Counted from the first letter of the stretch, positions 5,545 to 30,440 are shown. The stretch is 64,000 nucleotides of DNA from Trichosphaerium sp. ATCC 40318 (GCA_038496445.1 JALMLS010000561.1:1-64000), one strand, 5' to 3'. A program made the numbers and translations. The notes: generated by a model from the letters alone, not told the origin.

Positions 5545-8500
5545 CGAGCCGCCAACTACAGAACCACCTACTACACAGCCGCCTACAACGGCACCACCAA
5601 CCACGCAGCCACCTACCACACAACCACCAACAACGGCGCCTCCTACAACAGCTCCTCCAACTACTGAGCCGCCTACAACAGCTCCTCCAACGACGGCTCC
5701 TCCAACAACACAGCCGCCTACAACGCAGCCGCCAACGACTGAACCACCAACAACACAGCCTCCAACAACCGAGCCGCCTACTACGCAACCACCAACCACG
5801 GCGCCTCCAACAACAGCTCCACCTACTACACAACCTCCAACAACGGCTCCTCCAACAACAGCTCCGCCAACAACACAGCCGCCTACTACGCAACCGCCAA
5901 CTACGGCTCCGCCAACAACAGCGCCTCCAACAACAGAGCCTCCAACGACGGAACCTCCAACAACGGAACCTCCAACCACACAGCCTCCAACCACGCAGCC
6001 ACCAACAACAGCGCCCCCTACGACGGCTCCTCCAACAACAGAACCACCTACAACACAGCCGCCAACAACGGCTCCTCCAACAACACAACCACCTACAACG
6101 CAGCCGCCAACTACACAGCCTCCAACAACAGCTCCACCTACAACAGCTCCACCAACAACAGAGCCTCCAACAACAGAGCCACCTACGACGCAGCCGCCCA
6201 CCACAGAACCACCTACAACACAACCACCTACAACAGCGCCACCAACTACAGAACCTCCAACTACGGCGCCTCCAACTACAGAACCTCCTACAACTGCACC
6301 GCCAACAACGCAGCCGCCAACAACAGAGCCGCCAACAACAGCACCTCCAACCACGCAGCCTCCTACAACAGAGCCTCCAACAACGGAACCTCCGACTACG
6401 GCGCCTCCAACAACAAGACCTCCAACTACGAACCCACCAACAACGGAGCCACCTACAACAAACCCTCCAACTACAGAGCCGCCAACTACAGAGGCGCCTA
6501 CTACAGCACCACCCACCACAGAGCCTCCTACAACAGAACCGCCAACAACGAGGCCTCCAACAACAGAACCACCAACAACACGTGCTCCAACAACAAATCC
6601 ACCAACAACGGAACCTCCAACAACACGTCCACCAACAACAGAACCTCCTACGACGCGTCCACCGACAACAGAGCCACCAACTACATTACCACCAACAACA
6701 AGCCCTCCAACAACTGTCATACCTACTACGTTACCTCCTACTACTCTTCCTCCAACAAGAGTTTGTCCACCGTTCTCAACAACACCACCTATTATGAATA
6801 CATACAGAGTATTGAACCATCCAGGTGGTATTCAAAGACCTCCAGATTACTGTCTACGTCTTGATGCTTTATCTCCTGGAAACGTACGTACTAATTTTTT
6901 TTTTTGAAAACATGTGACAGAACGATTACAAAATGTTTGTTTTTTCTGATGCTGTTGTTCTTCGCTTACTAAAATTTACTAGGTTGTTACGTTCGATTGT
7001 GAGGCAGGACCAGAGCTATACATTCGCATAGATAGTGAACAGAATATTGTTAGAATCGTTGGTAATGTTATGGGAGGTATAGATACAGGTACAGAAATAC
7101 CTGTACCTCAAATGCTCGAGATTGATATCACATACACGTACGCTCTGAGAAAATACCTTTAACCCCTCTTCTCATGTTTAAACTTACCGTATGGGTTATT
7201 TATACCAAAAAATATAGTGGACTCCATTTTACGTTTGAAACAAAACAACCAAAGCTAATTGGTTTTTTTTCTTTCACGTTTTTTTTCACGTATCTATATG
7301 TATCATTTGCGGAGTTTTTGTTAATGTATTTATGTGTTTAGTGGCTTGACTTTTACTGGTGCTGCTCCAGAAATGGGTATAACAATAGCAACAGAAGGCA
7401 TGGGTATAATGAGATTCAATGGTGAAGTATTTGTGGTCATGGGTAAAATGTCACAAGAATCATTGACCTCACTTGAAATTTTCAGACCTCATCTCGGCGT
7501 TGTTGATGTATTCTCACTATTGTACGCTACCCATACACAAAACTTGAGAACTTTGAATTTAACGTTAAACAACACAACAAGAAGTATACTTCTTTGTGTT
7601 TCGTCTTTTTGTTTGTTGGTTTTTTTTACCACGTGCCGAATTCTTGGCTTACATTCTTGTTTAGCGGTTGGTTGAAGATTGCCAGACCGGGTGAAGCTTT
7701 CAACACACAATATGTTAACGATTGGCAAGCTACAATTGGTCCATGTGTATTCTGTGACCAAATCTTGGCAACACCAAGTGGTGGAAACATTGTCCCTACC
7801 ACAGAGTCGCCTACAGTTACAACACCACAACCGACAAACTCACCAACAAGAGTACCAACACCAATGCCAACGGCAGCACCAACAGCAATACCAACTGCAG
7901 CACCAACGGCAGTGCCAACCAACTCACCTACAGACGCACCAACAATAGCTCCTGCTTCGGCGCCTGTTACAGCATCGCCAACGGCAATGCCAACAGCTAC
8001 CCCAACGGCAACACCTACAGCAATGCCTACAGCAATGCCTACAGCTAGTCCAACAGCTACCCCAACAGCAACGCCTACAGCCACGCCAACAGCTATCCCA
8101 ACGGCGGCACCAACGGCAACACCAACTGTTGCTCCAACTGAACCACCTACAAACGTTGTTACACCAATAATGTCACCAGTATCAGAAATGTTTGATGGCT
8201 GCGGACTACCTGCTTTATGCCCTGAGGATTGCCCATCGTGTACTCAATGTGATTTCATGTGTCAATGCAATGGATGCGACTTTGAAAATCCTTCTTGTCT
8301 TTTCATTACAGCAAACCAAGGTAAACACCACACTGTTTTTGCCATTGGCTGTTTATCAACTGCTTAAAATCTCCCCTAGGTGATGTTTCCGTACCTGATA
8401 CTGTACCGAGATGTTTAGTCATTGGTCCTGGTGTTACAATCACGGGATCAGTACGCTTTTTTTTATAACCGTCACGTGCTAAAGGGTTTTTTTAGATCAC

Positions 8501-9521
8501 TGGTACTACATCTATCGATTGCGTATTACTTTCTGCTGGATCCACAGTTACAGGAAATATTAACTTGGGTGGAAACACTGATTGCTTACGTACAGAAGCA
8601 GCTACTGTCGAAGGAACCATCAACGGCGGTATGTGTCAATTAATAAGAACTTCAGAAACAAAAAGGACCACTCAACAATAATCTCTAATAATCTTCTTTT
8701 TATAGGATCTCAAGGCGATTGTATTGAGCTTAATGCGTTATCTAATGTCCAAGATATTATTTTGGGTTCTGGAGACAACTGTGTTAAAGCAGTATCCGGA
8801 GCTACAACAGGACCAATCACAGGTGGATCTGGAGATGATTGTATTCGTGCTTCAGGAGTATCTATACTATCCACAATTGACCTCGGAAGCGGTGACGATT
8901 CTGTTACCATAGATACAGCAACCACAGGATCTATCTCAAGTACGTAGTTAAAGAATACAACAAAATCTTAGAGCACAATGACGAGATTTCTAATTTCTTA
9001 CTTTAGCCGGTGACGACATGGATTGTGTATGGCTCACAAATGCCTTCACAGGAGAAGTTAGTGTCGGTGAAGATATGGATACTATCAGTATATTTGGAAC
9101 AAATACTACAATAATTGATGCTGGATCAGATGATAGTTGTGTAACAGTTAGGGACAGATCACTCGTAAATGGAATTGAAGGAAGTGCTGGATCTGATATT
9201 GTCAATGTTTTCAATTCATTCGTATCTGGATCACTTAACACAAACTCTGGTAATGATTACATCACCGTCGCTGGAATAACAGGAGAGTTAACCGGTGTCG
9301 GTGCTGGTATTAATGGAGGAGCTGGAGTTGATAATATTATCGTACAAGGCGCTTCCATTAACAGCATGTTCGGAGGAAGTGACAATGATTGTCTTGAAGG
9401 TAGAAGAAATACAGCACCTCAAGGCGGTACCGTCAATATTTCTGGTAATGGTGGTACAGATGTATGCGCTTCTGATGGCACTGGTTCATTTGCAGAGTGC
9501 GAATCTACATTTTCACTTTAA
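5545..9521 (+). CDS. Gene A (5'-truncated): secreted mucin-like protein with ~80 PPTT[Q/A/E/R] repeats, an unknown domain, PTAxPTA stalk, Cys-rich motif and RTX-like GxGxD repeats; multi-exon
   Basis: Open +strand frame gag ccg cca act aca... from ~5546, then CPPFSTTPPIMNTYRVLNHPGGIQRPPDYCLRLDALSPG. GT-AG introns. C-terminal ILGSGDNCV, ITGGSGDDCI, IDLGSGDDSV, INGGAGVDNI, GGSDNDCLEG. Stop at 9519-9521. Paralogous to gene B throughout. Confidence 0.85.
5546..6758 (+). repeat. Coding 15-bp tandem repeat (PPTTx pentapeptide, about 80 units)
   Basis: CCN CCN ACN ACN NNN periodicity with synonymous third-position variation, showing the + strand is the coding one. Confidence 0.95.
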
Positions 9522-10244
9522 ACAATATAAATTTGTAGAAAAGAAAAAGAGCTACTTACACTTATCCAATTTTATAAACAAACAGCCAGTAAAAAACAAT
9601 AAAATAGCTTTAGAAATATTATTTGCGTTTTTTTTCTCTTTGCTAGGGTTTTTACTGAAATCTTCTATGCTCTTCGCACTACTAGCTTCATAGCGACGTA
9701 TCTGCAAAGCCATAAAATTGATTTATTAGTTTGTGTTTTGAAGCAGTAATGACGGTTCATTTTGAATTGACAATCACGTGTTTCTGTGACGTTACAAAGG
9801 TTTCCTAAAGATAGGTTTTAGCGCACAGTTTCTTTTTTTGAGGTAGTTCTGGATAGTTGTACAATCTCTCTACTCTTAGATAAGGTTACCGTATATCTTT
9901 TATTGGAACCACAAAAGCTCAGGAACTAGCCTTACGGAGCAACAAAGACGTCTTTGGCGCCAAAACACAAAAAACTCCACAAACAAATCACGTTTTCCGA
10001 AAGGACGTTATGTACCTTTGTGACGTTGCCAACAGCAACTACTTCTTTGTAAGTGTGGTAAAGAAGATCATACAAATCTCTGAAAGGAGATTTTGTATCT
10101 GGTTTTAAAAAAACAACTGTTCACGGTGATATTTTGCTCTTGTTCTTGTTTTGGTCGCACCTCCTTAGGCCGTCAACAACTGCTTATCACTATATACATC
10201 CGATTATAAAGAACAAACAAAAGCGATACTAAACGTTTCCAACA

Positions 10245-13200
10245 ATGCTTCGGTTCGGTGTTATATCCTTTATACTGTGCCTAGCAGTGACCTATGTATC
10301 ATCACAGATTGTAATAGATGATTTTAATAACCCTGTTATGGCTGTAGCTAACCTAACCGTACAAACAATTACACTTGACACTATGGGCGCTGGAATCCTT
10401 GATGGCACACGTAGAATAACTGCTAGACTTATAAGCGCACCAGATGATCAATCCCGTGTAGTTTGCGTTGTTAGCGATAGAGGTGAAGGATCATTTATCT
10501 TAGCTGCCGATACAACAACGACGGGTAACTGTATGCTGGATTACCCTCTGGATATGCCTACAGACTTGATAAACGGACCAGCTTGTGGTAAGAGATTGTG
10601 CACTAAGTATTTAACAAACCTCCTAAATAGCCTTCATTTTAATCTTCTTGTTGCTTGGGCTAACGTCCAAGCGTCGTTTTTTATTTTGTTTCGTCATTGT
10701 GGCAAAATCTCCCTTTTTTTTTTTGTTCTTTTTTTTTGGGATTGTACTCACGTGCGTTGTCACGTGCCTACGAACCTTTTCCTATAACTAAGTGTTTTGT
10801 ACTGATTACAATTTAGATTGTTGGTTGACGCGTGCGACTTTATCAGACGCTGAAACTCGCGTGTCTTTCACTGCAGTCACCCAAACAGGAACCTTCTCAT
10901 CAAATGTTGTTATTCCAGATACCTTGTTCGGATTCAATCCTCTCGATCTCTGCCTACCTTTTGATAGAGCAAACATTCAAGCATACAGCCAAACCAACTC
11001 TATTCGAGTATTGGCTCTACCTTTAAGACTTGCCGGTGATATTCAACTCACATACACTTGTTGTGCGCCAAGTGTCTCATGGTAAGATTATTATCATAAA
11101 TCTATTTCATTGGTCTATACTAAGCCCATTTTAGTTGGCATAGCATAAATGCAAATACCCCTGCTGTCGCAGGTACGCCACAAAATTAACAATGTAACGT
11201 AGAATGTTAACTTTTTTTCCTCTTCGTAGGAGAGACTATCAGCATCTCATTTTCATGTGAAAACTACGTGTCTATTCCTGCAACTGCGGAGAATATAGAG
11301 GCTACTTTCCCTTTCCCACAATCTATTGGTACAATCCAAGCTCCGTCAGTATCATGTACTAACGTAAGTATACACAATATCTTTCCTACAAATTATTACA
11401 ATAAGATCACAAAAATCACGTGGTGATTTTTCTTTTGTTGAAAACTTACTTCACTTCTTTCTCGTCTTCCTGATGACTACGAGAATATTCTCTAATAAGA
11501 CTTATTTTTATGTTCCGTTGTAAATTCACGTGATTTTTTTTCTTTTTTATTACATTACTTTCTTTTCTTACTTTATTCTACTTTTTTACTCAAATCAAAC
11601 AGGGCAACCCAATATTGCTGAATAATGCTGTTGAGTTAACAATACAACTCGCTGAATCTGAAAATTTTACATGTACTTTTGATGTCCTACTTGAAAGTAC
11701 GTAACTTGAATGCGCAATAACACTCTCCTTTTGTTTTATTAAGCGACCCTATCCCTAACTTAACTACAGATGCTGGAGATACTGGAAACCTAGCAGGGTC
11801 TGTTGAAAATTTACAGGCTGGAACTACACTACGAACAGGTCTTGGCGGAAACAGGTTCGCAAATGAAACTACACGTATACAATTGTTGTACTAACAGTGG
11901 ATGTCTAGAGCAGGAACGAGAGCGTTTTGCGACCCTCCAGTTAGCAACGCTCTTCAAGTTATCAGTGCACCTACAACGCTTCCACCAACAACGTTGCCAC
12001 CAACGACGCTTCCTCCTACTACAGCGCCACCTACAACGTCACCTCCAACAACTCTTCCTCCGACGACACTACCGCCAACTACGTTGCCTCCAACTACATT
12101 ACCTCCAACAACTCTTCCTCCAACGACACTACCGCCAACGACGCTGCCACCTACAACGTTACCTCCAACAACGCTGCCACCTACGACAGCACCACCTACA
12201 ACGTTGCCACCTACTACACTCCCACCAGTAACGGCACCACCAACAACGTTGCCACCAACTACCTTACCACCTACGACGCTGCCTCCAACGACATTGCCAC
12301 CAACTACTATGCCACCTACGCGTCCTTGTCCACCTTTCACAACGTCACCAATCGCAACAGAGTGCTACAGGCTAAGAAATCATCCAGGCGCTATTGAAAG
12401 ACCACCAGAGTACTGTTTGCGTTTAGATGCCTTAGTTCCTAACGCTGTACGGATTTTCTCTTTTAAATGAATTCCACTTTGTATCAACAATTAACTTACT
12501 ACAACCAGGTTGTTACTTTCGATTGTGACACTGGTAATGGACTATACATACGTGTCGACCCAGTTCAAGATACGCTTCGTATTTTCGGTAATATCACAGG
12601 TGGTATTGACACTGGATTCGAAACGCCAAATCCTGTGAGCCTCGATGTTGACATTACATATTCGTACGTCTTTAGATTTCCTTTGCAAATCCTTTTTGCA
12701 GGACTCTATTTTCAGATCTTAATTCTCCTTCTACCAATGTTTACTTTACTCTATAGAGGCCTTAATATAATGGGAACAGATCCTAATAATGTTACTATAC
12801 AAATTGAAGAAGAAAGTATTGGATTCTTGAGATTTGATGGAGAAGAATATGTTATAATGGGTAAACAATCTGAAGATACAGGTTATTCCCTTGGAGTTAT
12901 CAGGCCACATCTCGGTGTAGTAGATATATTCTCTCTATTGTACGATCATTTCTTCTATTACATATCTTCAAACAAAACAAACAACGACACACGTCGCTTG
13001 AGCTCAAACAACGCTTTAAAACAAATCGAATTTTTTGTTTTTTTTGGAATAGCTTGCTTATGTATTTAAATAGTGGTTGGGTACGTATCGCTCGGCCAGG
13101 CGGACCTTTCAACACTGAATTCGTCAATGATTGGCAAGGAACAATAGGAGAGTGTATTCTATGTGAAGACATTGACTTAGGTGGTAGCGGTCAACCTGTC

Positions 13201-15043
13201 CAACCGCCACCTACACCAGTTGCTACCGATGCACCTACAGATGCGCCAACTACAGACGCTCCAACAGATGCACCTACAGAGGCTCCTACAGCAGCTACAG
13301 ACGCGCCTACAGACGCTCCAACAGCGGCTACAGATGCACCTACAGATGCGCCAACTACAGACGCTCCAACAGATGCACCTACAGACACTCCAACAGACGC
13401 TCCTACAGAGGCTCCTACAGCAGCTACAAATGCGCCTACAGACGCTCCAACAGCGGCTACAGATGCACCTACAGTCGCACCTACAGCGATTCCAACAGCA
13501 GCTACAGATGCACCTACAGACGCACCAGTTGCATCTCAAGCTTGTCCTTTGAGTCCAGAGAATTGTCCTACCGGTTGTAACCAAGTCTGTCCACAGTGCT
13601 TTGTTAGTTGCCAATGTGGTAACTGTAATTTCGGTGATGCAGGGTGTATGGTAATACCAGCCCTAGAAATGGTATTGGGTACGTAAAACTCAAAACAGGA
13701 ATTGTCAAACTGTATATTCAACGAAGTTATCTTTTTTTCTGATCCTTTTTTGTAAAGATGTTCAAGTTCCACCATCTGGATGCCTCGTATTGGAATTAGG
13801 TGCTATGGTAGCCGGTAGCGTAAGTACAAAAACTACTCTAGTGATTTTACTTTTGAAGAGAGGGTTACCTATAGAGCCCCGCGATTTGTTTTTTTTTACT
13901 TCAACCATTGAGAGCTTTACATCTACGCGATGGACTAGTCCATCTTCCTACACATTTGATTTTCTTTACGTGCTCTACACGCGAGTAGAGGATGTTGCGT
14001 TTTTTTCGGCATAGAGCTTACGAGTTTACTAGATTACTGGTACATCTGGAAACGATTGCGTACTTTTAGGTGTAGGAGCAGCGGTATTTGGTGATATCAA
14101 CTTGGGTGAAGGAAATGATTGTATCCGTACCAACACTGCAAATGTTGATGGCGAAATCAACACAGGTATGAGAAAAAAGAAAGAAAGCCAAAAGAGGCTT
14201 CATTGATATATTATGCTTCTTCGTTTGCTTAATAAGTGTCTTAAGGTTCTGGAGATGATTGTGTCGAACTGGATCAATCACAAGTGCAAGGTATAGATCT
14301 TGGCGATGGAATGAACTGTTTGAATTCCGGCAACTCTGCAGCACAAGATATTTCTACAGGAGATCAAAGTGATTGTGTTTTGCTCAGTCAGGGCGGAACC
14401 TATGAAGATATTGAAACCGGCGCAGGAAACGATATAGTCATTGCTACTACTTCAATCACAACTTTTGCTGTTGATCGTAAGTTCTAAATGTTCATGTGTT
14501 TTTTTTAACAACTCCTTCTTTTTAGTATCTGATGGTGATGACTGTTTTGAATACTCTCTATCATCAGCACGTGGAAGTTTAGACCTTGGTTCAGGAATGG
14601 ATAATGTTATTGTAAACGAAGGTATAGTAGGAGACATCAATGCCGGAACAGGACGTTCTTGTATGAGGATAACTGCTTCTTCAACAACTGATACTATTAC
14701 GGGAAGTTCCGATACAGATAATATCTTTATATCCGAATCAACAGTTCAAGGCCCTGTTAACTTGGGAGCAGGAAACGACTTTTTATTCGTTGAAGGAAGC
14801 GCACAGTTCAGATCTGCTATTGATGGTGGCGCTGATGGCGGTGCTGGAGTAGATAGTCTCATTGTAACCGATGCTTTCGTTTCTTCCATTTCAGGCGGAG
14901 CTGATAATGATTGCTTGTATTCTGAGGATAATTTTAACCCTGCCGGTGGTCTTGTGTCTGTCGATGGATCTGCTGGTAATGATGTATGTTCATCTGATAA
15001 CATGGGAGAATTTACTAGTTGTGAAACTACAGCTACGTTGTAG
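10245..15043 (+). CDS. Gene B: secreted modular surface protein (signal peptide, N-terminal globular region, PPTTL mucin stalk, unknown domain, PTDAPT stalk, Cys-rich motif, RTX-like Ca-binding repeats); multi-exon
   Basis: MLRFGVISFILCLAVTYVSS signal peptide. Exons linked by GT-AG introns (e.g. gtaag at 10588). IDLGDGMNCL, IETGAGNDIV, LDLGSGMDNV, VNLGAGNDFL, GGADNDCL, DGSAGNDVC. Stop at 15041-15043. Confidence 0.85.
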
Positions 15044-15720
15044 AGCAGAAAAGAAATAAACAGTTTTAATTAAAAATAAAAAAAAAATTTCCTTATTTTC
15101 TTTACTCCATACGACATTTACTGACAGGGTAAAAACAAAAATACTTTAACTCAACACGGTGCACCTCTCCATAGTTACAAACTTATCAAAGCTTTTGCAA
15201 CAAAAACTCAGATTTCAGATGAGCAGTACATTTGTCGTTTGGTGTCCATAGAAAACTCACCATTTTATGTGGTATTTTAGCTTCTCGCTTACAACGCCCC
15301 TGAAATGCATACTCATACGTCACACTTGGCTCCTACGCGAGTAAAGGCCGTACAGAGAAAGCACTGGAGCACTCACTGTGTTGCTCTTAAAAGCATTGCT
15401 GTTCAATTGAGCGCCTAACAAACAAAGGGAGTGTACATTCTGAATGAGATATCAAGTGGCTATTTTCAGCGCCATCATTTGCCTGATAAGTCAACCTAGA
15501 TATTCTCCACTCAACAAACGTTGATTATTAGTTGCAAATTGCCGTGTAGGCTGTTAAATTGGTGTCTAGCTTTGCAGCCTTTAGTTTAAATACTGTGCGG
15601 CACATTTAGTGTTTATACAGTGACACTTATCGTAGATTGCGTACGGAGCAACGTGTAAAGCCTTGAAGAGCGTTTAAACCAATGTGTGTACGTAAACAAT
15701 TTAAGACTATCCATTTAGCC

Positions 15721-18700: not shown

Positions 18701-19783
18701 TTGGCTTCTTTTATTGCACAAATGCTTGATGACATTGAAACCACTAGAACAAACCTTTATGGCACAAGAGTGCTGTTATTCTCTGGTATGTAATTACGGC
18801 TGATTTTTTCTTCAGTTGTATTCTGAATATTGTGACGTTGCACCGTCTGGTTTGTGCTCATTTTTTGTACAATAGGACAAAGCGCAGTCTCTTGGATGCT
18901 TAAACATAAAGGATTGGTCGAGCGTGAGCACGCTACTATGATGCTACAGCGAATGGTTAACAAAGGTATGTTTTTGATTTAGAACTATCCAACTTCATTT
19001 TGAGGCTTCTTTATTTACTAAAATACTCTAAAATAGGCGTAATAGCAAGTATGGATGGTGAAGATGTGTTTCTTGATAACGAAACAGAATATTTTGTTCC
19101 TGTACAATGCCATGAAGACTGTTTTTCAACAATCCTTTATGCTCATCTTCTTTTTAGGGTGCACCTGTTATGGATGATATCCATCCTGTTGTTGCTCGTA
19201 AACCTCTTCCACCTTCAAGATCAGAATTATATAATACAATATATAATGATATAGTACTATATCAACGTACATCTGATATGGTAGGCGTTCTTGCGAACAA
19301 CATATTCTTTTCTCATTTTTTTCTTTTTAGGGTTCTGAGTTGAAACAATTTTTCCAAGAGATGGCAAATTCTCAAACAGGTATATTTCTTTATTTAAATA
19401 ATGTGTAAACTAATAATGGGTAATAGGAGTGCATATAAAAGACCGATTTGTGCAAGTTAATGCGAGAGTAAGAACATCATACAAGCAAAGTTTTATCGGT
19501 AAGCAAACAAAAAATCGCTTAAAAACAAACACTTTCCTAAATACTCATTAGGTTCTGATGCGTTGTCTTGGTGTTCAAACCATCTCAAAGCCTCCAAAGA
19601 GGATTCTGTACATATTTTTTTAGAATTACACACTGTGTTAATGCGTCGATTTGACATTTTTAGGCATCACTTCTTGCTAAGATGTTGGAAGCACATTTGA
19701 TTGTTTTAATGCATCTATCAAAGGAAGATGATAACAAAGTATTCGATGAAGAGTCACTGTACCATATTCAATGTGTAAAATAG
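15721..19783 (+). CDS. Four-TM (MENTAL/TMD0-like) membrane protein with three (possibly four) tandem DEP domains; multi-exon
   Basis: Spliced N-terminus WLVFTLCIVLDLVAVVFFV..QVLLYNWKTSSIEVAAVAILR..SSVVASLAVSVKLCIF..LLLLICFVVMLFLLVPLLITMAKRR. DEP signatures KCFVGKEAVSWL..FKDDFVMYRF, FSGQSAVSWML..FLDNETEY, SFIGSDALSWC..FDEESLYHI. Start codon inferred. Confidence 0.7.
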
Positions 19784-20082
19784 AATCCTACTTTTAAGGC
19801 GGGTTTAAAACTAAACAAGAAACCATTCTGGAATATATTTTTCTTTTGTAAAGCAAGATGACGGGTTGTAGTTTTCGTAAATCGCACGTGATAATTTGAC
19901 TGCTCCAACAGGCTAAGTACAGTTTTATTGCTTACGGTCGCGAAAAAGGTGAGAATACGTGTGAGGACACAGACTTAGTTGTCAATAGTCACTTGTTGTG
20001 CAAAGATAGTAAACAAGAAAACACTCAAAGAAAGTGTTTATAAATTTTCTTTTCTTAAATATTGTATTCAGGTGCAATTACT

Positions 20083-21480
20083 CTACATAATGGTGGATTT
20101 GTATACATCCGTTTCTTGCAGCATATCATTTATAATATCAAATCCAATAAGACACATTGCTGCAGGTAGTACCCTGTAAAATAACAGTTAAAGATAACCA
20201 TAAGAATATAAAACAAATCAAAAGCAATTGCACAAGTTCTCTTCGACTTGATAGAACTTGCACATGATAGCGTTTTTGTGTTTTATAACATACGACATGC
20301 TTCGAAGAGTAATTCCTCTAAAAAATGGCCGGAGTCCTGCTTCACGGATAACCTTCAAAGAAAGTGTTGTCCTTAACAAAAAAGGGTCAGAATCATTTTG
20401 TATTTTAATTGGTGAATGGCAAGTACACTTACTGACTAATAGTGGCTGGTATGCCTGCTTTAACATTTTCTATAACAGTGCTCCTGTGTATGGCTTGGGC
20501 CATATTAAGAGGATATGCAGATATGAACGCTGTAAGAGAAGCAAGTAAAGACAAAACGCATTTTCCATACAAATCTGGTTTTTGATTATCAACAATGCTT
20601 AATGTATCTTTTGCTGTATCATAGACGCCAAAATATAATGTACGATATACCAATATACTTGGAAGCCTACCAACAACTTTTTGATATGGTGTACCTAATC
20701 AACAAGCGTCAGAAAAAAACAAGAAAAAAAAAACATGACATAAAAATGTTCTTGTTTCCATTCCACCCGAAATAAGCTCATAAAAAAAAATTACGTTCAG
20801 GTAATTACACCATAGTATACATCTAGAGAGATCACTTTGAGGCATTAAAAAGACTCAACAATGCCGAAAAAATAAGCGGAACTTTTTTGTAAAAACAGTC
20901 AAGTCAGATCATTAAAACAAAAGCGCAATACGCTGTGCGCGTATTACTACGCGTAATTAGCGTACGTGGATCTTTTGGGGTTACTTTGTAACTTTGTGTC
21001 CCTGACACAGCGAGAAAAGTCAAAAAAGCAGTTGTAGCACTAGCTACCATATTTGCGGCAACCTACAAATGGTTTAACGGTTGTTTTTCGTTGAACATGT
21101 ATGTTACGCTTACCAAGTCTGTATAATCAAGGAATACCGCGGATTTCATGAGCTGATATCGAATAATGCCCCTAAAACAGAATGCTAATCCTTGCGACCC
21201 AGCGTATGGTATCATCTCTGTAAGAAGCCCTTTATGTAACCCTTTGCACGTATTAGAATGCGTTTTCGCTGTCATTTGTACCGTTTATGCCGTGCTGTTT
21301 AAAATGGTGTTGTACTTTTTCTACGTATAATTTAGACTCATTACTGGAAGACCCATTAGGTATTAACGCTGATAAGACAGTGTGGGATGATACTCCGTGT
21401 GTCAAAGTTTTAGCGCTTGCAGCTACTGCTAATCCCGTAAGCAGGTCAAGTGCTGGACTGGGAGTATAACAGAAGGTCAT
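20083..21480 (-). CDS. Mitochondrial carrier family (SLC25) protein, divergent ADP/ATP-carrier-like; multi-exon
   Basis: GLAVAASAKT, GLHKGLLTEMIPYAGSQGLAFCF, SILVYRTLYFGVYDTAKD, SAYPLN, GLRPFFRG; three-repeat layout. Confidence 0.8.
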
Positions 21481-21556
21481 TATAAGCCATTGAGGTTGAG
21501 AAATGGTCAGAATGATCAAGTGAAGTCAGCACATGTCAAAAGTGAATTTTGCCAAA

Positions 21557-22859
21557 ATGTCGAAGCAGAAGAGCATAAGAATCTATACAGTTGACGCTTT
21601 CACGTCACAAATATTTGCTGGTAACCCTGCAGGTGTTTGTGTCTTAAAAGATGCTATAAAAGAAGAATTAATGTTACAAATCGCTGGGGAGATGAAGTAC
21701 GCGTGCTCGACGCGCATTTATGACTTTACCAGGTAATACTGACAGAAACCAGGCACTCTGAGACTTGTTTTGCTGTGACAGACTTGCAAAACTTGCTAGA
21801 CAATAAACCAGTTGGTTTAAGATGGTTTACTCCAGTCGTTGAAGTAAATTTGTGTGGTCACGGCACATTGGCTACTACAATGGCGCTTATCGAAGAATTT
21901 GAGCTACTAAAGCGTAACGTCACTAATATAAGGTTCGTTCTACTTTTTAAACGGTTTTAACGAACAAACGTTACAAAACGCTCTCACGCCGCGTTACTAG
22001 CGCGTTCGTCATCTCTTCGTTCACTAGGATACTGTAAAACCAGTTAAATATCACTAGATACGCAACACTGAGCGGAGAGCTCATTGTATCGTGGGAAAAA
22101 CCAACAGATGGCAAATTACCATTGCTTGCAATGGACTTTCCTCAAAATCCTGCTGAAGAATTTGCCATTGACGCAAGTACAAAAGAACAATTCGCTAAAT
22201 CTCTTGTACGTATCCAACCATGCAACATACCCTTAAGGTCTATGCTTTATTGTATTTTACTGACCCTTATCAATAGAAGATAACAAGTGATGACATCACT
22301 GCTATTACCTATTCTCCAGGGACTAAAAAACTTATTGTTGAAGTAACTTCAAGTAATATTGTCAAAGCAGTAGATCCTGATCACAACGCATTGACAAGGT
22401 GCATTTTTTATATATACATCTATCTAACTAATGGAGTACTAACACATTTTTAAGTGTACCGTATTCTAAGGATGTGAGAGGTGTATCTGTAGTTACAACA
22501 AAACTTATTGACCTTGATCCAAAATTCGACGGTTGTGATTTCGCTTCTCGGTATTTTACACCTTGGAATGGTATTCCTGAGGATCCAGTAAATGGTATGC
22601 AACATGCGTGGATTTATGGGTTTTTTTATGTCACGTGAGAAACACGTGATAAAAAATTTTAGCGCCTAAACAAAGCCTAGGTTCTTCACATACTGTGCTT
22701 GGACCGTACTTTCAACAGAAACTTGGAAAAAGCGAATTAAAGTCTGGAATTCTTAGTACAAGAAGTGGTGTTATGTATTTATCTGTTAAGGACAATGGAC
22801 GAGTTGTTATATCAGGCAACGCATCAGTTTTCTTGAAAGGATGTATTAATGTTCCATAA
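21557..22859 (+). CDS. phzF: PhzF/PBLD family isomerase; multi-exon
   Basis: VDAFTSQIFAGNPAGVC, HSETCF, LRWFTPVVEVNLCGHGTLA, SRYFTPWNGIPEDPVNGSSH, RVVISG. Start may be 21533 or 21557. Confidence 0.93.
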
Positions 22860-23101
22860 AGAGATATCATGCAACCTTATCTCCATCTCGTGTTTACTTA
22901 GTCTCACTTGACACTTAGAAAGAATTGCATTAGATCATCTAAGAAGAAGAGATGAGACGTTTAAAAAACGAGATTTTGTGTGATTTTCCTGCGCAGGTTT
23001 TTTGCTCAATTTTCCATAAAACAGTTACATAATTGTTTTAATGCATTGTCACGTGTTTTGATTACATAGAGATTATACAGAAAACAAAACCAAGGCAGAT
23101 C

Positions 23102-26000
23102 ATGGACGATACAGCATTAATTATAGTCATTGCATGTTTTGGAGCTTTATTTATTATCATGGTTGTTATTATTGCTGTAATACTCGTACTGAGGTATGTT
23201 TGCTTTGTTACAATCAATATATCCATTAACAATGCTCCTACGCTGATAGTTATCGCAAGTTATCATCGTCAAAGCCAAAAAGGTACGCTTGATTAAAAGA
23301 CATTGTATTAGTTTTTATGAAACACATTGTAATTAAAATAGCACTCAAATAAGGATGGTGTCTTCATCTGTTAGTAACAACGAGTATACACCTTTAACTC
23401 GCATCGGTGAGTGGCATAGAATACAGTTTTTTTTACAATGATTCAAAAAACTTTTGATCAAAAAAAAGAAAAGTCACACGTGTTTTCTTTTTATTACGCT
23501 CACGTATTGATGTCTTTGTATTGTAGAGCCCAGATATCGCAGATTAAGCATAGCAGAAGTTACAAGCAAACAAAAAACCTCAGAAGAGTCAGAAAGCATA
23601 TCAACACCTCCATTTGTGCGTACCACGTGTTTTTTTGAGGCGTTGTTTTAACTTTTCCATTGTGAATTTGTTCACACGACCATTAACGCCAGTGACGCCA
23701 ACAAAATATTTAGGCAGGTACAAGCACAGAAGAGGATGATAATGATGATTTCAGAGCGCCTTCAGGACGTAAAAGAACACTATCGGTATCATATCTCAAA
23801 ATGAGGACAAAGGACTCTTTTTTGGCTCTTGAACCAAGTCAGGCTGGTAAATTCACTCATGCGTATGTAGTGGTTTTTGTATTTTTTTCCGATAAGAAAA
23901 TTCTTAGTTGGTACACACTTTGAATTCTCATTATAACTTTAGAGGAGAGATAGCTCCTGATGAGTTACCAGTACATATATCGAAGACAGATTTGGATTTT
24001 GGTTTAGGTGCTACACAGATGCCTGTAGGTCGCTCAATGAGCGATGTTGTTGTCCTAAGGTATGTTTATTGGATACTAGAAAAGTATGTTGGAATATTTA
24101 TGTGGATAATTAATATAGGCCAAAGCCGTCAATGAAGAAAGATGTTGTTTTCTCTTTTTCTCAACCGAAATCACAAAAGTTTAATTTCACGTTTTCTCCA
24201 AAACGTGGTAAAGTTAAGAAGGTATAGTTTCCTCTTTTATACTTTGGTTGTCTGTTAATATGTGGGGTTTTTTAAGGGGAAGGATACTAGAATCAAAATA
24301 ACACTCACAGTGAACTGTACAACAAAAATAAGAGCTGCAGTTAGAATTAACTTTAGAGATATTGGGTTTGCTATTCTTGATTGTTTCTTACTAAGCGAAC
24401 TTTCTCCTTTTATTGATTATGATGAAATAAAGTTTGACGGACAAAAGAGGTTGCTTGGTGAGGGAGCGTACGCGTTCAAATTTGATTAACGAGCATTCAA
24501 CAAACCCGAGAACCCAAAACTTTTTTATAATTACCTTTCGTATTTTTCTTATACATTCGTAGCTTGGCTAGAGTATACTATGGAGAGGTATGCTGTTTAA
24601 AAAGCGCTCAATATATTCTATTAATAATTCAAATCATTAGTACAGAGGAATGCAAGTTGCAGTAAAGAAGTTCAAGCTTCAGACAATGCCTGAATATGTT
24701 CGTGTTGATTTTGAGAGGGAATTGAACTTACTAAGTTCGATACGACATCAAAATGTTGGCACGTGATATTCACGTGTAAAACAAACTCATTGCTAATTTT
24801 GGTATCTAGTACAATTTGTAGGAGCGTCAGTTATTGAAGGTAAACTAGCAACATTATCAGAACTTGCTCCTCTTGGATCTGTTGCAGACATCATAAAAAC
24901 AAAAAGATTGAGTGTAAACTTGAAGTTAAAATTCGCTTGGGACGCAGCCATGGGTTAGTTTGGAAACCTTCCATATTTTTCTGCTATTTATTGTCTTTCT
25001 TGAAGCAAGGTCTATCCACATGTCCTTTGAAACAACCAACTTGTAGTTCTTTTATATTGTAGGTTGTTTTTAATCTTTTCTTTTTAGGGCTTCATTACTT
25101 GCATAAAGGGAAGATAATGCATAGAGATATCAAAACAGAAAATATGCTCGTTTTTTCAATGGTAAACGACGCTTTAGTTAATGTTAAACTAGCTGACGTA
25201 AGTGTACAAACAAAACTGAATGGTGCTCTTTTTTTTATTTTAACTAAACTTCATAGTTCGGGATGAGTAGAGCTATAAATCCAAAAGCAGATAGACTCAC
25301 TGGGACAACAGGTAATTTTATATTTTCATCATACTATGCAACAAGCGTAGTGGTCACCATCAGGGTGGCTTTTGCATAGTGCAAAAAGAAAACCAAAACG
25401 AGTCTTGTTCATATTCTTCTTTTTCAATATTTTTGGTTTCGCAATGTTACAAGTTAGCTTATACTTTTAAATATAGGAACACCAAATTATATGGCTCCAG
25501 AAGTTATGCTTGATGATAACTATTCGCTAAAGGCAGATATCTACAGGCAAGAGAAAACATAGGACCACTTTTTTTTTTGGCAAATAGTTTTTATTCTTTT
25601 GAGTAACCCTTATTAGCTTTGGTTTGGTCTTATGGGAGCTCTATATGCAAAGACCAGCTTTTGAAAATATCAAAAAACTTATGGACTTGAAAGAACACGT
25701 TGTTTGTGGTACGTCAACCAACGTTTACCTTTACAACTGTAAAAAACCCAACTTGACTTTCGTTTCCTACTTATCACGTGATGAAAAAAAACTTCACTTA
25801 CAAACCACTAAGGTGAGAGAGAAGATATACCAAACGATTGTCCAACTGGACTTAAAAATCTGATACAAAGATGTTGGGCTGGTAAAGCAGAGGAAAGACC
25901 TAATTCTGGTCAACTGGCAAAAAGACTAGCAGTTCTTTACTCAAATGCTCTTCGCAGCAGCGCTCGACGTCTAAGAAATGTGAACTCCTCAATGTTCTAA
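23102..26000 (+). CDS. Membrane-anchored tyrosine-kinase-like (TKL) protein kinase with a TMK-type pre-kinase Ig-like segment; multi-exon
   Basis: N-terminal TM IIVIACFGALFIIMVVIIAVILVL. LDFG..PV..FSPKRG..LTVNCTT. Kinase motifs LLGEGA, VAVKK, HRDIKTEN, DFG, GTPNYMAPE, DIYSFGLVLWEL, CWAGKAEERP. Confidence 0.9.
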
Positions 26001-26158
26001 CACCAGTTCAACAAGATACATCTTTTTTTTTTCAAAACACGTGTTGTAAGCTTGTTACTTATCAAGGTTTGTTTGAGTGTTTTCAGTGAAATGTACAAAA
26101 AAAATAAAGTGTTTAACTTTTACTATCTACAAACATAAATGATTCGTGTCTTTTTGTT

Positions 26159-29100
26159 TTAAGGTATACAAATACCAATAGAAGCGTATATATTGGTGTT
26201 GTATACTTGATTACTGAATCTATCAAATCTTCCAAACAATCCACTTAAAAAAACAATTTAGAGGATTTTAAAGAAACTATCTTTAGATTTGCTAATACGT
26301 ACCTCATCCTGTATCCACTTCCCTCATTAGAAACTCGGACACTCTCAAAACCAGAAATTGCACTTATTTGGTATACCATACTCTAAGACAATCGTTAAGG
26401 GAAGAAGAGTAAAAAGGTGAGGAGTAATAAATTAAAAAAAATAAGAAAATAAGAAAAAGCTCCGCACGTTGAAGACAATTAAACCTTGTCTGACGCTTGA
26501 TGATGACAAAATAAAGTTTGGTGCGGATCCAATGACATTCACATTACTATTTAAGAAAGTTGTGAGGAAAAAAAATAGATGCAGTAGTCTTTAAACACTT
26601 ACTCAAAGATAATTTGGATAGATCCTAAAGTGTTGCTTTGACGAACATTTCCAACATCAACACCACCGTTTACAAAACCAGCTACGGTTATTGTACCTTC
26701 ACTGGCATCAAAAGATACTCTGACATTTTGTGCTACACATGACAATGTCACAGGATTCTAAAAAGCAAAAGAGTTAACGACAGAAGGTGCAAACTTTAAA
26801 AAAAACGTTTTGTTTTACCTGTCCTGGATTTTCTAATCGGAAACAGTACGTTGGTGGCGCTTCTGGTCCTGAAGTGTCTGATAATGCAAATGTGCCTGTT
26901 GGGAACACTCCTCCTACAAGACTAAAAGGATTACATCCTGTAACAGGAGCGTTTGTAGGTGCAATTGTTGGAGCTGTTGTTTGAACAGGCGCGTTAGTTG
27001 GTGGCTCTGTAGGCGGTGCGAATGGTGCATTAGTTGGCGAGGCTGCTACAGGAGCATTCGTTGGAGAGGCTGTTTGAACAGGTGCATTTGTTGGTGGTGC
27101 TGTTGGAGGAGGCACAGGAGCGTTTGTTGGCGATGCGGTAACTGGTGCGTTTGTTGGGGAAGCTGTTTGAACTGGAGCATTCGTTGGTGGTGCTGTTGGA
27201 GGAGGAAATGGTGCGTTTGTCGGTGGTTGTGTTGGAGGAGGTACAGGGGCATTAGTTGGAGATGCTACTGTTGGCGCATTAGTTGGAGCAGCTGTTTGGA
27301 CAGGAGCATTTGTAGGTGCTTGCGTTGGGGATGGAAAAGGTGCATTTGTTGGTGGTTGCGTTGGAGGAGGTACTGGAGCATTTGTTGGAGATGCTGCAAC
27401 TGGAGCGTTTGTTGGGGAAGCTGTTTGTACAGGTGCATTCGTTGGTGGGACTGTTGGAGGTGGGAATGGAGCATTTGTTGGAGATGCTGCCACTGGTGCA
27501 TTTGTTGGTGGTTGTGTTGGAGGAGCGAACGGCGCATTGGTTGGAGACGCTGCCACAGGTGCATTCGTAGGAGAGGCTGTTTGAACAGGTGCATTTGTTG
27601 GTGGTGCTGTTGGCGATGCTGTTTGTACTGGTGCATTGGTAGGTGCCTGTGTTGGAGGAGGCACTGGAGCATTCGTTGGAGATGCTGCCACAGGCGCGTT
27701 CGTAGGAGAGGCTGTTTGAACAGGTGCATTCGTTGGAGAAAGTGTAGGTGCATTTGTTGGAGAAAGTGTAGGTGCATTCGTTGGAGAAAGTGTAGGTGCG
27801 TTCGTTGGTGATGCGCTAAGGATATCAGCACAATTAATGGTAACATCACCATCAGTCCAAATAGGAAGACAGTTAGGTAGATTTCTTTCAACTGAATACA
27901 AGTTAGAAATTGTAAGAAAAAGAAAAAATTAATAGGTAGTACTTCTCCATGCAACAGCTGCTCTTAATAGTAGGTTTACACGTTCACTACTAGTACCATA
28001 GAAGTTCTCTCTACCGAAATAAAGACCAATGGGGTTATTATTTTGATTGCATCCTGTCGACATGATTGATCCTGTTCAAGACTTTAAGTTACACTAGTAA
28101 GAAATATTGTTGTATTTTTTACCTTGAGTTGGATTTCCGACACTTCCAGGAATACAGCCTATTTCAGCTCCACATCCGTCAATACTTTCAGTTACTTCGA
28201 ATCCAGGAATAGGAATTGTTAAGGTTGAATAACACCTTGTATGTGGGCTACCAGCGTTGTGTCCAATCTCATGAAGGAGAACAGCCTTAAAACAATCGAG
28301 TTATGATAAGAAATGCTGAAAGAAGAAACAGTTCTGTGAGGACTAGTACCATTGAACCGAAAGCAAATTCCCAGCCAATAGTTGACACGGAATAAGAACC
28401 ATCGCAGAAAGTGTTCACGGAAGCCAAACCCTGTGATGCATTGGGTTGGTCATCGAGGTAAATCCCTATAGCAGTTTCTCTTTGTACAGCCATCTTTGCA
28501 CTTTAAAAAAACGGTAAGTTTAGCTTAGTCAACTGTTTTGTTACTTACGGGTCAGTTTGATATAAACTTTCTATTCTATTTAAAACATTATTAGTAGAAG
28601 CAGTAAATCCATTATATGGATCGGTATCTAGGAGGTAAAGAAAATTAGATATGAATGAAGAAAAAATGGATGGTACTTTGTTCAGTGTAATAGAAGACTG
28701 CTGCAATTTTGAGTTTAAGTGCGTAATCTCTTTCATATATCCAACTTCCCCAAGCGAAAGTACCAGTAATCCAGTCTATTACAAATTGTTCATTTTGTCT
28801 AGTGCCACGGAATATATCAGAGGCTATGTCAACCGATACCTATGTTGAGAATATTTTGAGAAATGAAGGATGCAAAACAAAAAAAAAAGCCATACCCTTG
28901 CTGTATAGTACGGAAAGTTCAGTGGTAAGCTACCGTAACTAAATCTAGTTGTGGAGAGTTGCTCTGCCTCTCTTTTGAATTCATCATGGTGATGATCAAA
29001 GTCACAAGAGTGTGTCCCGCGCACTATCGTAAAAAGAAGTCAATATTTTAAAAAAATTAAAGTGTTTAGGTAATTACTTTGTTCATGTGCTTCTCTCTTT

Positions 29101-29834
29101 CTTGTTACTGCAGGGAGTATGGAAAACTCTTCATCGTATTCAATATTATTTGCTTGACCACGAATGATTATAGCGAATCCTCTCTAAGATAGCAATTTGA
29201 ATCAGTAATGTCTTAAACTGGTTTTGAATGTAAAAGTACATTGAAGAGTTCTAAATTGTTATAGCCTCCAAGAATCTCCAAGGATGATTTGTCTACCATC
29301 AGGAATGCAGTTGATCTCTCTCTTGTCGGGCTAGTAGCCACATCACCATAGAAATACCACTTATCTGGAAGAAAGATTTTTTTTAGAAACAAGCTAAATC
29401 CCCTAAATAGCTAAACATCTTTCCCCCCTTTTACCTCATTACTACGTACCTGGGTTTGGTTGGACTTGATTGCCATTTCGCGTAATTACTGTGGTTGATA
29501 AAAAAGGTGTATCGATCCTAAATACTTCAAGCGTGATGCGTTGAACAGGGTCATTAATGAGCCACGTGACTGTATTTGTTGAGTTGATGGTATTTTGACA
29601 ACTTGACGAAATATCAGCGACAAACTCTTCCCACGTGACTGTTGCTTGTCTTTTGGCGCTTGTTTGCGTCTCTAAAGTAACTTTTAACAACAAACTATAC
29701 GTTATAAACCACGACGGCAAGGTAACAGTACCACGTTTAATAAAAACGTGCCGTGTACCGATGTATAATGTTTACGCACCTGAGAGTATACATGGAACTA
29801 AACATAGTAGAAATAGCGCTACTAAGGTTCGCAT
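26159..29834 (-). CDS. Secreted metzincin (reprolysin/M12B-like) zinc metalloprotease with PTNAP mucin stalk and a C-terminal domain shared with genes A/B; multi-exon
   Basis: Signal peptide MRTLVALFLLCLVPCILS. HEIGHNAGSPH (28241-28273) fits HExxHxxGxxH. Met-turn GSIMS. P/T/A repeats 26945-27810. C-terminal PPTYCFRLE..IGICIP. Confidence 0.88.
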
Positions 29835-30440
29835 ATTATATGGCACGATGCTTTTCACTCTAACTTCGTTATGGGATACGTTTAAAACACGAGAAAACAC
29901 AATTTATTTCGATCAATCTCGAAAAATTACACGAGATTTTTTTGCGAGATTTTTGTACACATAGACAAATTGATAAGATGGCCGAGAATTCTAGAGCAAT
30001 AGCCAAGACAGGGTTTATGCTATTAGACTTGATTTTTGTAATTGGCTACCAGAACGTTTCAAAAAACGTGATTCTATTTACGGACTTAAAACAAGAAATC
30101 CTGACGATCATGTTTTCAGTTGCCATAAGCAAGGAGCTTCTGTAGTATCACTCGCTCTAATCTGTAAGGAGCATTCATCCTTGAAAGCGTAGATTCATGC
30201 TCAGAGTCACTCATTAAGTCGAGCGAGAACACGTTTTCTGGAAGCTGCTTGATCAAACACAAAATCTCTACTCGCGAACTGCCTACGCGTTGACTGATCG
30301 CCAGATTGAATTTACTTGTAGACCATCAAATAACTTTTTTTGACGCGTGGGAAAACTGGCTTGGTTTTCAGATACAGTCAACGAAAATAAATTCCTTTTT
30401 TTCTTTTACACTAAGCCGTTTTTAAACGGCCTGGGCTTGT

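Follow-up and report, generated by a model that had tools for sequence, protein, structure and literature searches.

An extracellular module shared by stalked secreted proteins of Trichosphaerium sp. ATCC 40318 and a family of bacterial PEP-CTERM proteins

The 64,000-nucleotide stretch of Trichosphaerium sp. ATCC 40318 DNA considered here (JALMLS010000561.1:1-64000, hereafter the window) is eukaryotic sequence, with a guanine-plus-cytosine content of about 37% and genes that carry short GT-AG introns. Two of these genes, A and B, code for secreted proteins with long Pro/Thr-rich stalks, and a third, on the opposite strand, codes for a putative metalloprotease. A previous sequence-only reading had proposed that the two adhesin-like proteins and the C-terminal tail of the protease share one extracellular domain. 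The motifs and coordinates that it quoted for the three genes were reproduced by frame reading, and the domain was seen behind a Pro/Thr stalk in all of them. The present analysis concerns this domain, its relatives in bacteria, its predicted fold, and the part it may play in the proteins that carry it.

In genes A and B, the domain is about 170 residues long, is spread over four exons, contains four cysteines and begins straight after a long Pro/Thr-rich stretch (Table 1). Its motifs follow in the order C-P-P-F, N-H-P-G, P-P-x-Y-C-L-R-L-D, V-T-F-D-C, G-G-I-D-T-G, G-W, and N-D-W-x-x-x-I-G-x-C. Window sequences were searched exon by exon, and the spliced sequences used were proteins taken from databases. 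Splice sites were read from the DNA; those of gene B were compared with the transcript-derived protein P0002, and those of a relative of the protease tail on contig C157 with P0131.

The gene B protein (P0002; 1092 residues, source MMETSP and JGI) comprises a signal peptide, an N-terminal domain, a Pro/Thr stalk, the domain under study, which is predicted below to be a barrel, a further Pro/Thr stalk, a Cys-rich knot, and a region of GxGxD repeats, and it has no membrane span. The C-terminal layout of gene A is the same. The first domain exon of gene A is the 3' end of a long Pro/Thr-stalk exon, open from 5528, with a phase 0 donor (GTACGT) at 6884, while the fourth continues through the second stalk and the Cys-rich knot to about 8340. 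The repeat region of gene A, which the sequence-only reading had described as a beta-roll, has paralogues at 14561-15037 and on contigs C47 and C8, and has no match in Pfam or NCBIfam. The Cys-rich knot, at 8190-8340 and 13590-13680 and also present in C47 and C8, reads approximately C-P-x-x-C-P-x-C-x-x-C-x-x-x-C-Q-C-x-x-C-x-F and lies between the second stalk and the GxGxD repeats in all four places. A Pfam scan of the gene B open reading frame that includes the knot returned a PT-repeat match only, the knot not having been searched by itself.

The protease gene is read from the minus strand. Its catalytic exon (28097-28300) holds HEIGHNAGSPH, an instance of the HExxHxxGxxH zinc motif of metzincins (M12-like), and the exon at 27932-28075 holds a GSIMS segment that is a candidate Met-turn. 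Searched as a single exon, the catalytic exon matched Pfam Reprolysin_5 with an E-value of 1.8e-5 and 25.5 bits, below the cutoff of 27. The first exon of the tail domain is the end of a Pro/Thr-stalk exon open from 27928, which gives a stalk of about 330 residues. From their adjacency and canonical splice sites, we infer that the protease exons and the tail form one gene.

Genes A and B are readily recognised as relatives of each other. Their four domain exons match by blastp with E-values of 9e-11, 7e-19, 3e-14, and 1e-12 (exons 1-4, small six-frame database), at 48-65% identity per exon (58% in exon 2 and 48% in exon 3). Hereafter, A/B-like copies are called type I and tail-like copies type II. 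Between the types, pairwise comparison is silent: the exons of gene A have no blastp match to the protease tail even at E<10 (six-frame database of the window and related loci), and P0002 has no significant BLASTP match to P0004, which among the spliced proteins is the closest to the tail. Profiles do connect them. A profile made from type I exon 2 alone matched exon 2 of the protease tail over its full length (25.1 bits; E 0.003, assuming 3.8 million six-frame segments), and across 110 kb its matches were the type II copies of that exon, all of them and no others. Comparison of the two types by hhalign, one exon at a time, gave collinear matches for exon 1 (P 5.6e-13), exon 2 (3e-12), exon 3a (6e-4), and exon 4 (3e-5), with exon 3b not significant.

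Gene structure and bacterial relatives point the same way. Introns lie at identical positions and in identical phases (0, 2, 2) at three aligned sites in A, B, and the tail: in phase 0 just before V-T-F/L-x-C, in phase 2 within the codon that follows I-T-Y or I-I-F, and in phase 2 within the codon before G-W or G-L. The tail has one extra intron, in phase 0. These shared positions and phases are not produced by chance. Moreover, the bacterial protein P0008, described below, has BLASTP matches to both P0002 (5e-15) and the type II protein P0004 (6e-9), and thus joins two amoeba subtypes that have no pairwise match to each other. Chance or convergence between Cys-containing, beta-rich segments would fit the silence of pairwise blastp, but it is barely credible in view of four collinear profile matches, an independent bridge through bacterial sequences, three introns of the same position and phase, and the same four Cys positions. 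The by-eye alignment of the tail with A and B is therefore without pairwise BLAST support and yet holds at the profile level (hhalign P 6e-13 for exon 1 and 3e-12 for exon 2), as well as through introns and the bacterial bridge. On this comparative evidence, the domain of A, B, and the protease tail is confirmed as one homologous extracellular module.

Table 1. Positions in the window of the domain exons, the genes that carry them, and the duplicated copies.
Feature	Position	Strand	Remarks
Gene A domain exon 1	6758..6883	+	Six-frame reading; Cys1 at 6764, NHPG and Cys2-RLD motifs
Gene A domain exon 2	6983..7137	+	VTFDC (Cys3) and GGIDTG motifs
Gene A domain exon 3	7342..7521	+	AG at 7340-7341, GT at 7522; phase 2 at both ends
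Gene A domain exon 4 start	7665..7761	+	GWLKIA, NDW, Cys4
Gene A C-terminal repeat region	8582..9521	+	Open reading frames with GxGxD-type repeats; partner module, outside the domain
Gene B, whole gene	10245..15040	+	Transcript-derived P0002 maps here, exons at or near 100% identity
Gene B domain exon 1	12321..12446	+	Donor GT at 12447, phase 0
Gene B domain exon 2	12509..12663	+	Exact match, P0002 residues 500-551
Gene B domain exon 3	12757..12939	+	Exact match, P0002 residues 552-611
Gene B domain exon 4 start	13074..13164	+	GWVRIA, NDW, Cys4; exact match to P0002 from residue 613; runs into second stalk
Protease upstream exons	27932..29903	-	Six-frame reading; signal-peptide-like start near 29835
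Protease tail, type II domain exon 1	26819..26938	-	Cys1, Cys2-RLE; hhalign P 5.6e-13 against type I exon 1
Protease tail domain exon 2	26603..26757	-	VTLSC and GGVDVG motifs
Protease tail domain exon 3a	26468..26546	-	Kept in six other type II loci; frame backed by transcript-derived relative P0004/P0131
Protease tail domain exon 3b	26303..26382	-	Intron between 3a and 3b, not in type I
Protease tail domain exon 4	26159..26243	-	SGLFGRF, Cys4, stop codon; hhalign P 3e-5 against type I exon 4
A'	2..1612	-	Second copy of gene A stalk and domain exons 1-2; ends at window start
B'	2368..5184	-	Duplicate of the 5' two thirds of gene B; ends after exon 3

The module has no entry in the family databases searched. 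No Pfam or NCBIfam model matched the domain in single exons, in the spliced proteins P0001, P0002, P0004, P0006, and P0131, or in bacterial members, and the marks that these databases placed on those proteins were confined to sorting signals, VWA, and stalks. A few weak single-exon rows (KH_PARP14_2, Spike_JR1, and FlaK on intron-encoded residues) were discarded as noise. A word-index protein search with exon fragments also came back empty, owing to its length window. A PDB sequence search with an exon 2-3 profile returned nothing, a search with three close amoeba sequences found no relative in genome, viral, and metagenome collections, and the ESM Atlas gave no usable match. Literature searches turned up no account of the domain family.

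Relatives emerged from a large HMMER search, in which a profile restricted to amoeba exons 2-3 (alignment A4) was run against 1.84 billion proteins. It returned the transcript-derived proteins of the amoeba itself, P0001, P0002, P0004, and P0006. Because MAFFT had laid exon 3 fragments on exon 2 columns, A4 consists of exon 2 fragments and two rows that are continuous in reading frame. This profile matched the PEP-CTERM proteins P0007 (E 1e-4) and P0008 (E 7e-4), with the bacterial matches ranging to 8e-4. Both proteins are short (238 and 229 residues, respectively) and consist of a signal peptide, the domain, and a PEP-CTERM sorting signal. Longer arrangements were also among the matches: P0009, from a metagenome-assembled genome (MAG) of Phycisphaerales, has three copies of the domain together with a LamG-like domain (Laminin_G_3), and P0005 has four tandem copies followed by a C-terminal membrane span. 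Two further candidates were rejected as spurious, neither being matched by the bacterial-only hidden Markov model (HMM) described next. These were P0003, a protein of Solemya velum with C-type lectin repeats whose E-value of 4e-10 summed six weak matches, and the long repeat protein P0010.

A word search seeded with two bacterial proteins yielded 494 homologues at E<=1e-3. The 120 of these that were listed are 210-271 residues long, cover 74-100% of the query, and carry PEP-CTERM or VPDSG-CTERM as their only Pfam annotation; among the matches listed, those with a name are called 'PEP-CTERM sorting domain-containing protein' or 'hypothetical'. An HMM built from these 120 bacterial members alone scores gene B at 59.1 bits, P0001 (the protein of the C257 gene) at 56.7, and type II proteins at 27.8 and 21.3; for single exons, it gives 23.5 and 23.6 bits to exons 1 and 2 of gene A and 12.8 bits to exon 2 of the protease tail. 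The lower scores of type II mark it as the more diverged branch. A single peptide pattern located 92 loci in bacterial species genomes from at least five phyla, mainly Phycisphaerae/Planctomycetota, Gamma-, Beta-, and Alphaproteobacteria, cyanobacteria, and Myxococcota, with one in Vicinamibacterales.

Taken at the level of sequence, these matches show the amoeba domain to be homologous to the sole globular part of small bacterial PEP-CTERM/VPDSG-CTERM (exosortase-sorted) proteins, which form a large family without a name. The same domain of about 170 residues is found in small proteins (about 220-250 residues) of Hyella patelloides, Acaryochloris thomasi, Nitrosomonas sp. Nm51, and many MAGs of Phycisphaerae and Gammaproteobacteria. 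The bacterial and amoeba versions have in common the motifs NHP.G, PP.Y.LRLD, TFD, GG.D.G, and GW followed by DW, and the same predicted barrel; type II, unlike the bacterial proteins, is without much of this motif set. The amoeba copies differ from the bacterial ones in having introns, in lacking the sorting signal, and in being set in long multidomain proteins behind Pro/Thr stalks. The PEP-CTERM signal was detected by Pfam and NCBIfam in bacterial members only and in no amoeba protein examined, and exosortase is absent in eukaryotes. The amoeba proteins are consequently homologues of the domain rather than members of the sorted-protein class. The sequence-only reading had not recognised the domain as a named family and had envisaged a profile search for bacterial surface proteins. 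Such proteins were indeed found, and no well-characterised Pfam family accounts for the domain; it is nevertheless recognisable, as a family of bacterial PEP-CTERM/exosortase cargo.

Predicted structures describe the module as an all-beta fold. An AlphaFold2 model of P0008, made from 120 sequences, has a predicted local distance difference test score (pLDDT) of 87.5 and a predicted template modelling score of 0.78, and is all-beta; DSSP assigns 13 strands to residues 37-204, and the PEP-CTERM helix comes after them. In Foldseek, this model matched nothing in the PDB at E<0.02. Exhaustive structural alignment gave best Z scores of 10.4 for a designed transmembrane barrel and 10.0 for the OprF N-domain (root-mean-square deviation, rmsd, of 3.0-3.1 Å over 115-117 residues), followed by OmpW, PagL, and NspA (Z 8.7-9.3), avidins, YceI-like proteins, BcnA/B lipocalin-type barrels, haemophores, and TbpB barrels. 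With this method, models that have no clear relative typically reach a best Z of 7-8. A model of the type II protein P0006, with a domain pLDDT of about 66-91 over residues 241-350, returned the same list of barrels with a best Z of 8.6, although this test is not fully independent since the multiple alignment behind it combines amoeba with mostly bacterial members. The structural check envisaged by the sequence-only reading thus yields a closed barrel and no PDB relative at the Foldseek threshold: the domain is predicted to be a closed up-and-down beta-barrel that has no specific solved relative.

Several known barrels resemble this prediction in architecture. The YceI-like and bacterial lipocalin barrels (TT1927b, Escherichia coli YceI, and Burkholderia BcnA and BcnB) are likewise up-and-down barrels of about eight strands and about 170 residues, secreted or periplasmic, and have the longest structural overlaps with the domain (127-136 residues, Z 5.8-7.6). 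A YceI-like module appended to a cell-wall-degrading protein of Saccharophagus degradans (PDB 2x34) offers a precedent for a barrel on an extracellular enzyme. With no Pfam YceI match, 5-12% identity, and Z scores at background, however, the likeness is an analogy of architecture only. The eight-stranded barrels of the OmpA/OprF type have the highest Z scores (9-10, rmsd 3.0-3.3 Å over 115-123 residues), but these are embedded in lipid. The amoeba domain, by contrast, is predicted to be disulfide-bonded and sits between the glycosylated stalks of a secreted protein, and its bacterial version has a separate membrane anchor. CUB, discoidin, bacterial pre-peptidase C-terminal, and RTX-adhesin ligand-binding domains are shuffled non-catalytic modules on secreted metzincins and adhesins. 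They follow the same logic of a small beta-rich module behind a linker on proteases and adhesins, but have no sequence match to the domain. The peptide-binding domains of RTX adhesins headed the Foldseek list, but these matches, with E-values of 0.02-0.04 and template modelling scores of 0.16-0.19, are unconvincing.

The four conserved cysteines of the amoeba copies can be placed on the predicted barrel; the proposed disulfides are derived from the predicted strand positions. At positions 55 and 74 (P0008 numbering), 119 of the 120 bacterial members have Gly and Phe, whereas P0008 itself and all four spliced amoeba proteins aligned have Cys at both. Since both sites border a predicted hairpin (strands 56-59 and 69-73), two neighbouring strands are likely to be joined by a Cys2-Cys3 disulfide. 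The outer cysteines bracket the strands, Cys1 immediately preceding the first and Cys4 immediately following the last. As the ends meet in a closed antiparallel barrel, a Cys1-Cys4 disulfide probably joins the first strand to the last and staples the closure. P0005 has the outer Cys pair without the inner one, a pattern that fits two independent disulfide pairs.

Conservation within the bacterial family is extensive. Across the bacterial phyla, some 50 positions reach 85% conservation or more, His44, Arg57, Asp59, His166, Arg167, Trp177, and Asp197 among them. The conserved residue set against which the amoeba copies were compared is Tyr39, His44, Pro52, Tyr54, Arg57, Asp59, Thr71-Phe72, Gly94, Gly98-Gly99, Asp101, Gly138, His166-Arg167, Gly176-Trp177, and Asp197-Trp198. 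Type I copies keep nearly all of the N-terminal part of this set. Gene B also keeps His166, Gly176, and Trp177, as well as, by eye, the Asp-Trp of the last strand; type I lacks Asn179-His180 and mostly lacks Arg167. Type II lacks the His of NHPDG (His44), and its C-terminal third is left unaligned by the bacterial HMM. In the MAFFT alignment, it also reads without the Trp of SGWGW and the Asp-Trp of SDW. Given these losses, it is doubtful that the two subtypes bind the same ligand.

The window holds only part of the amoeba's complement. When exon 2 was searched against the complete assembly (642 contigs, 70 Mb), 21 matches appeared at 18 or more places, in two subtypes whose exon 2 sequences are only 21-30% identical. 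Type I comprises A, A', B, B', a copy on C77, C39, C257, C47, and four near-identical short copies; type II comprises the window protease, C157, C2, C25, C8, C117, C33, and C155:67076. For gene B and the C257 gene there are MMETSP transcripts, and the proteins of C157 and C25 are encoded on JGI/IMG contigs of 1.8-1.9 kb, which we take to be transcripts.

The barrel is combined with mucin-like Pro/Thr stalks and with a variety of partners. The C257 protein (P0001, 810 residues) has an N-terminal region of unknown identity, a VWA domain, and the barrel at its C-terminus. It ends, like the amoeba type II proteins P0004 and P0006, at or just past the barrel. In P0002 and, by exon reading, in gene A, a stalk follows. 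A type II barrel ends three metzincin genes (the window protease, C155:68218/67076, and C117:108585/110743), and it also ends the C157 protein (P0131), a non-protease with an unknown N-domain. In C8, a type II barrel is followed by a Cys-knot and repeats that resemble the corresponding parts of A and B. The protease paralogues at C155:121349 and C16:76409 have no barrel nearby. The presence of type II on the non-proteases C157 and C8 means that subtype and partner module do not correspond one-to-one. The earlier description of a shuffled module is well borne out by these partners: beta-rolls, VWA in one protein, metzincin proteases in three cases, and unknown N-domains.

Among eukaryote-like sequences, the domain is rare: the searches made found it in the amoeba and in P0005 and two relatives, P0132 and P0133, only. 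These three proteins belong to another organism and lie on transcript-sized contigs; P0132 and P0133 add malectin (carbohydrate-binding) domains. A quick maximum-likelihood tree placed amoeba types I and II in one group, with a Shimodaira-Hasegawa-like approximate likelihood ratio support (SH-aLRT) of 97, apart from P0005 and with both types on long branches. Together with the shared introns, this grouping suggests a single acquisition in the amoeba lineage, followed by intron gain, duplication, and divergence. Bacteria are the most likely source of the family, with gene transfer preceding the gain of introns.

With regard to function, we lean, at slightly better than an even balance, towards the reading that this bacterial-type barrel module, multiplied in the amoeba, acts as an extracellular binding or targeting part. 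The barrel would hold secreted proteins to a component of the matrix or surface, most likely a glycan or other non-protein ligand, and the partner module would add adhesion or proteolysis. By gaining two disulfides, the eukaryotic copies would have become self-contained modules fit to sit between stalks. Type I, which keeps conserved polar and aromatic residues, may retain the ancestral ligand, while type II, from which most of them have been lost, would probably have another ligand or serve as an anchor only. We infer ligand binding by analogy, from the fold class and the domain partners. The mature bacterial protein that the exosortase pathway displays consists of the barrel alone, whose conserved positions, shared across phyla, include several His, Arg, Asp, and Trp. 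The soluble analogues (YceI-like proteins, BcnA/B lipocalins, avidins, and haemophores) are ligand-binding barrels. The partners are either adhesive or lectin-type (VWA, Laminin_G_3 in P0009, and malectin in the relatives of P0005) or enzymes that need positioning.

A number of observations weigh against this reading. For none of the members, in bacteria or in eukaryotes, did literature searches find a ligand, a binding assay, or a localisation. The neighbourhoods of two bacterial loci have no common theme and give no functional hint, one lying beside restriction-modification genes and a TRAP transporter and the other beside a sigma-54 regulator and an oxidase. The best Z scores (10.4 and 8.6) are at background level for the method, with membrane barrels among the matches. 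The junction of protease and tail comes from adjacency and splice sites. As for origin, the long amoeba branches could have been grouped by attraction, and the direction from bacteria to eukaryote follows from distribution only.

The sequence-only reading had gone further and proposed that adhesins and protease are directed to one shared target, in a surface coat or adhesion system with a matched remodelling enzyme. This part finds no support: the subtypes are old (21-30% identical), type II has lost conserved residues, and type II occurs on C157 and C8 as well as on proteases.

The barrel might instead be a passive structural module, that is, a rigid, disulfide-stapled knob that caps or punctuates the glycosylated stalks or aids folding and secretion, and binds nothing. 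This is unlikely, yet it is a serious contender. Type II remains intact despite its lost polar residues, with C157 and C25 present in transcript-like contigs, and the predicted Cys1-Cys4 staple is specific to eukaryotes and would suit a spacer. On the other hand, a bacterial barrel that is the whole mature protein must act by itself, the conservation of some 50 positions at 85% or more across phyla goes beyond what a spacer needs, and type I retains several of the conserved residues.

An improbable alternative is that the barrel is a small enzyme or metal site, acting for example on a matrix polysaccharide, with type I active and type II dead. PEP-CTERM proteins are generally tied to exopolysaccharide production, and His44, His166, His180, His192, Asp59, Asp197, and Arg57/167 are invariant or nearly so in bacterial members. 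Nevertheless, no similarity to enzyme families was found in Pfam, NCBIfam, or the PDB, type I has already lost His180 and mostly Arg167, and barrels of such size are usually binders. That the barrel is inserted in the membrane in the manner of OmpA/OprF, and would anchor the amoeba proteins there or form pores, is highly improbable even though the top structural matches are eight-stranded transmembrane barrels (designed, Z 10.4; OprF, 10.0; OmpW/PagL/NspA, 8.7-9.3), as these Z scores are near background and almost equalled by soluble barrels, no OmpA-type Pfam match exists, the bacterial proteins are already anchored by their C-terminal PEP-CTERM helix, and a domain that in A and B lies between two Pro/Thr stalks, with predicted disulfides, has a soluble extracellular design.

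The binding or targeting reading also admits a more specific form, which is speculative and quite unlikely as it stands. A captured exosortase-cargo domain may have been turned into recognition modules for bacterial biofilm matrix or prey surfaces, with type I tethering adhesive proteins to a bacterial or own-coat polymer and type II bringing metalloproteases to a second target. If true, the amoeba would possess an inherited, diversifying set of 'grips' built on a fold that has no characterised member.

Whichever function applies, the findings define a domain family that is absent from the Pfam and NCBIfam copies used, with hundreds of members among at least five bacterial phyla and with one branch, in an amoeba, that has expanded and carries introns. 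The family now has a confidently predicted fold and a predicted disulfide pattern, and the element common to at least 18 genome places that code for secreted, stalked proteins is explained. The homology also ties poorly understood PEP-CTERM/exosortase cargo to eukaryotic surface proteins, so that a ligand identified in one kingdom would inform the other. It is a finding at the level of the domain, and to place one binding module on both adhesins and proteases is a familiar design.

Two further copies of the domain in the window, A' and B', were absent from the earlier list. A' is 100% identical to gene A in exon 1 and 96% in exon 2. B' has two frameshifts within the barrel domain, and is probably a pseudogene, unless the assembly is in error there. 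Together, positions 1-5184 are a rearranged duplicate of the A/B region, and the first coding exon of gene B has a third partial copy at 1989-2424, on the plus strand. Outside the window, a copy of gene A at G000:C77:260300-264356 (loci L005 and L016) encodes a 100% identical protein across the domain exons and the C-terminal repeat open reading frame, and is either a very recent segmental duplication or a region assembled twice. The four short, diverged type I barrel genes, near-identical to one another and situated on small contigs (C393:23741, C500:19412, C521:8043, and C559:4003; loci L033-L036), could be a repeated element or uncollapsed assembly copies.

The donor sites have a minor peculiarity. 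In seven of the 11 introns examined (6884, 7138, 7522, 12447, 12664, 12940, and 26302), the donor is GTACG rather than the common GTAAG or GTATG, which may reflect a genome-wide preference.

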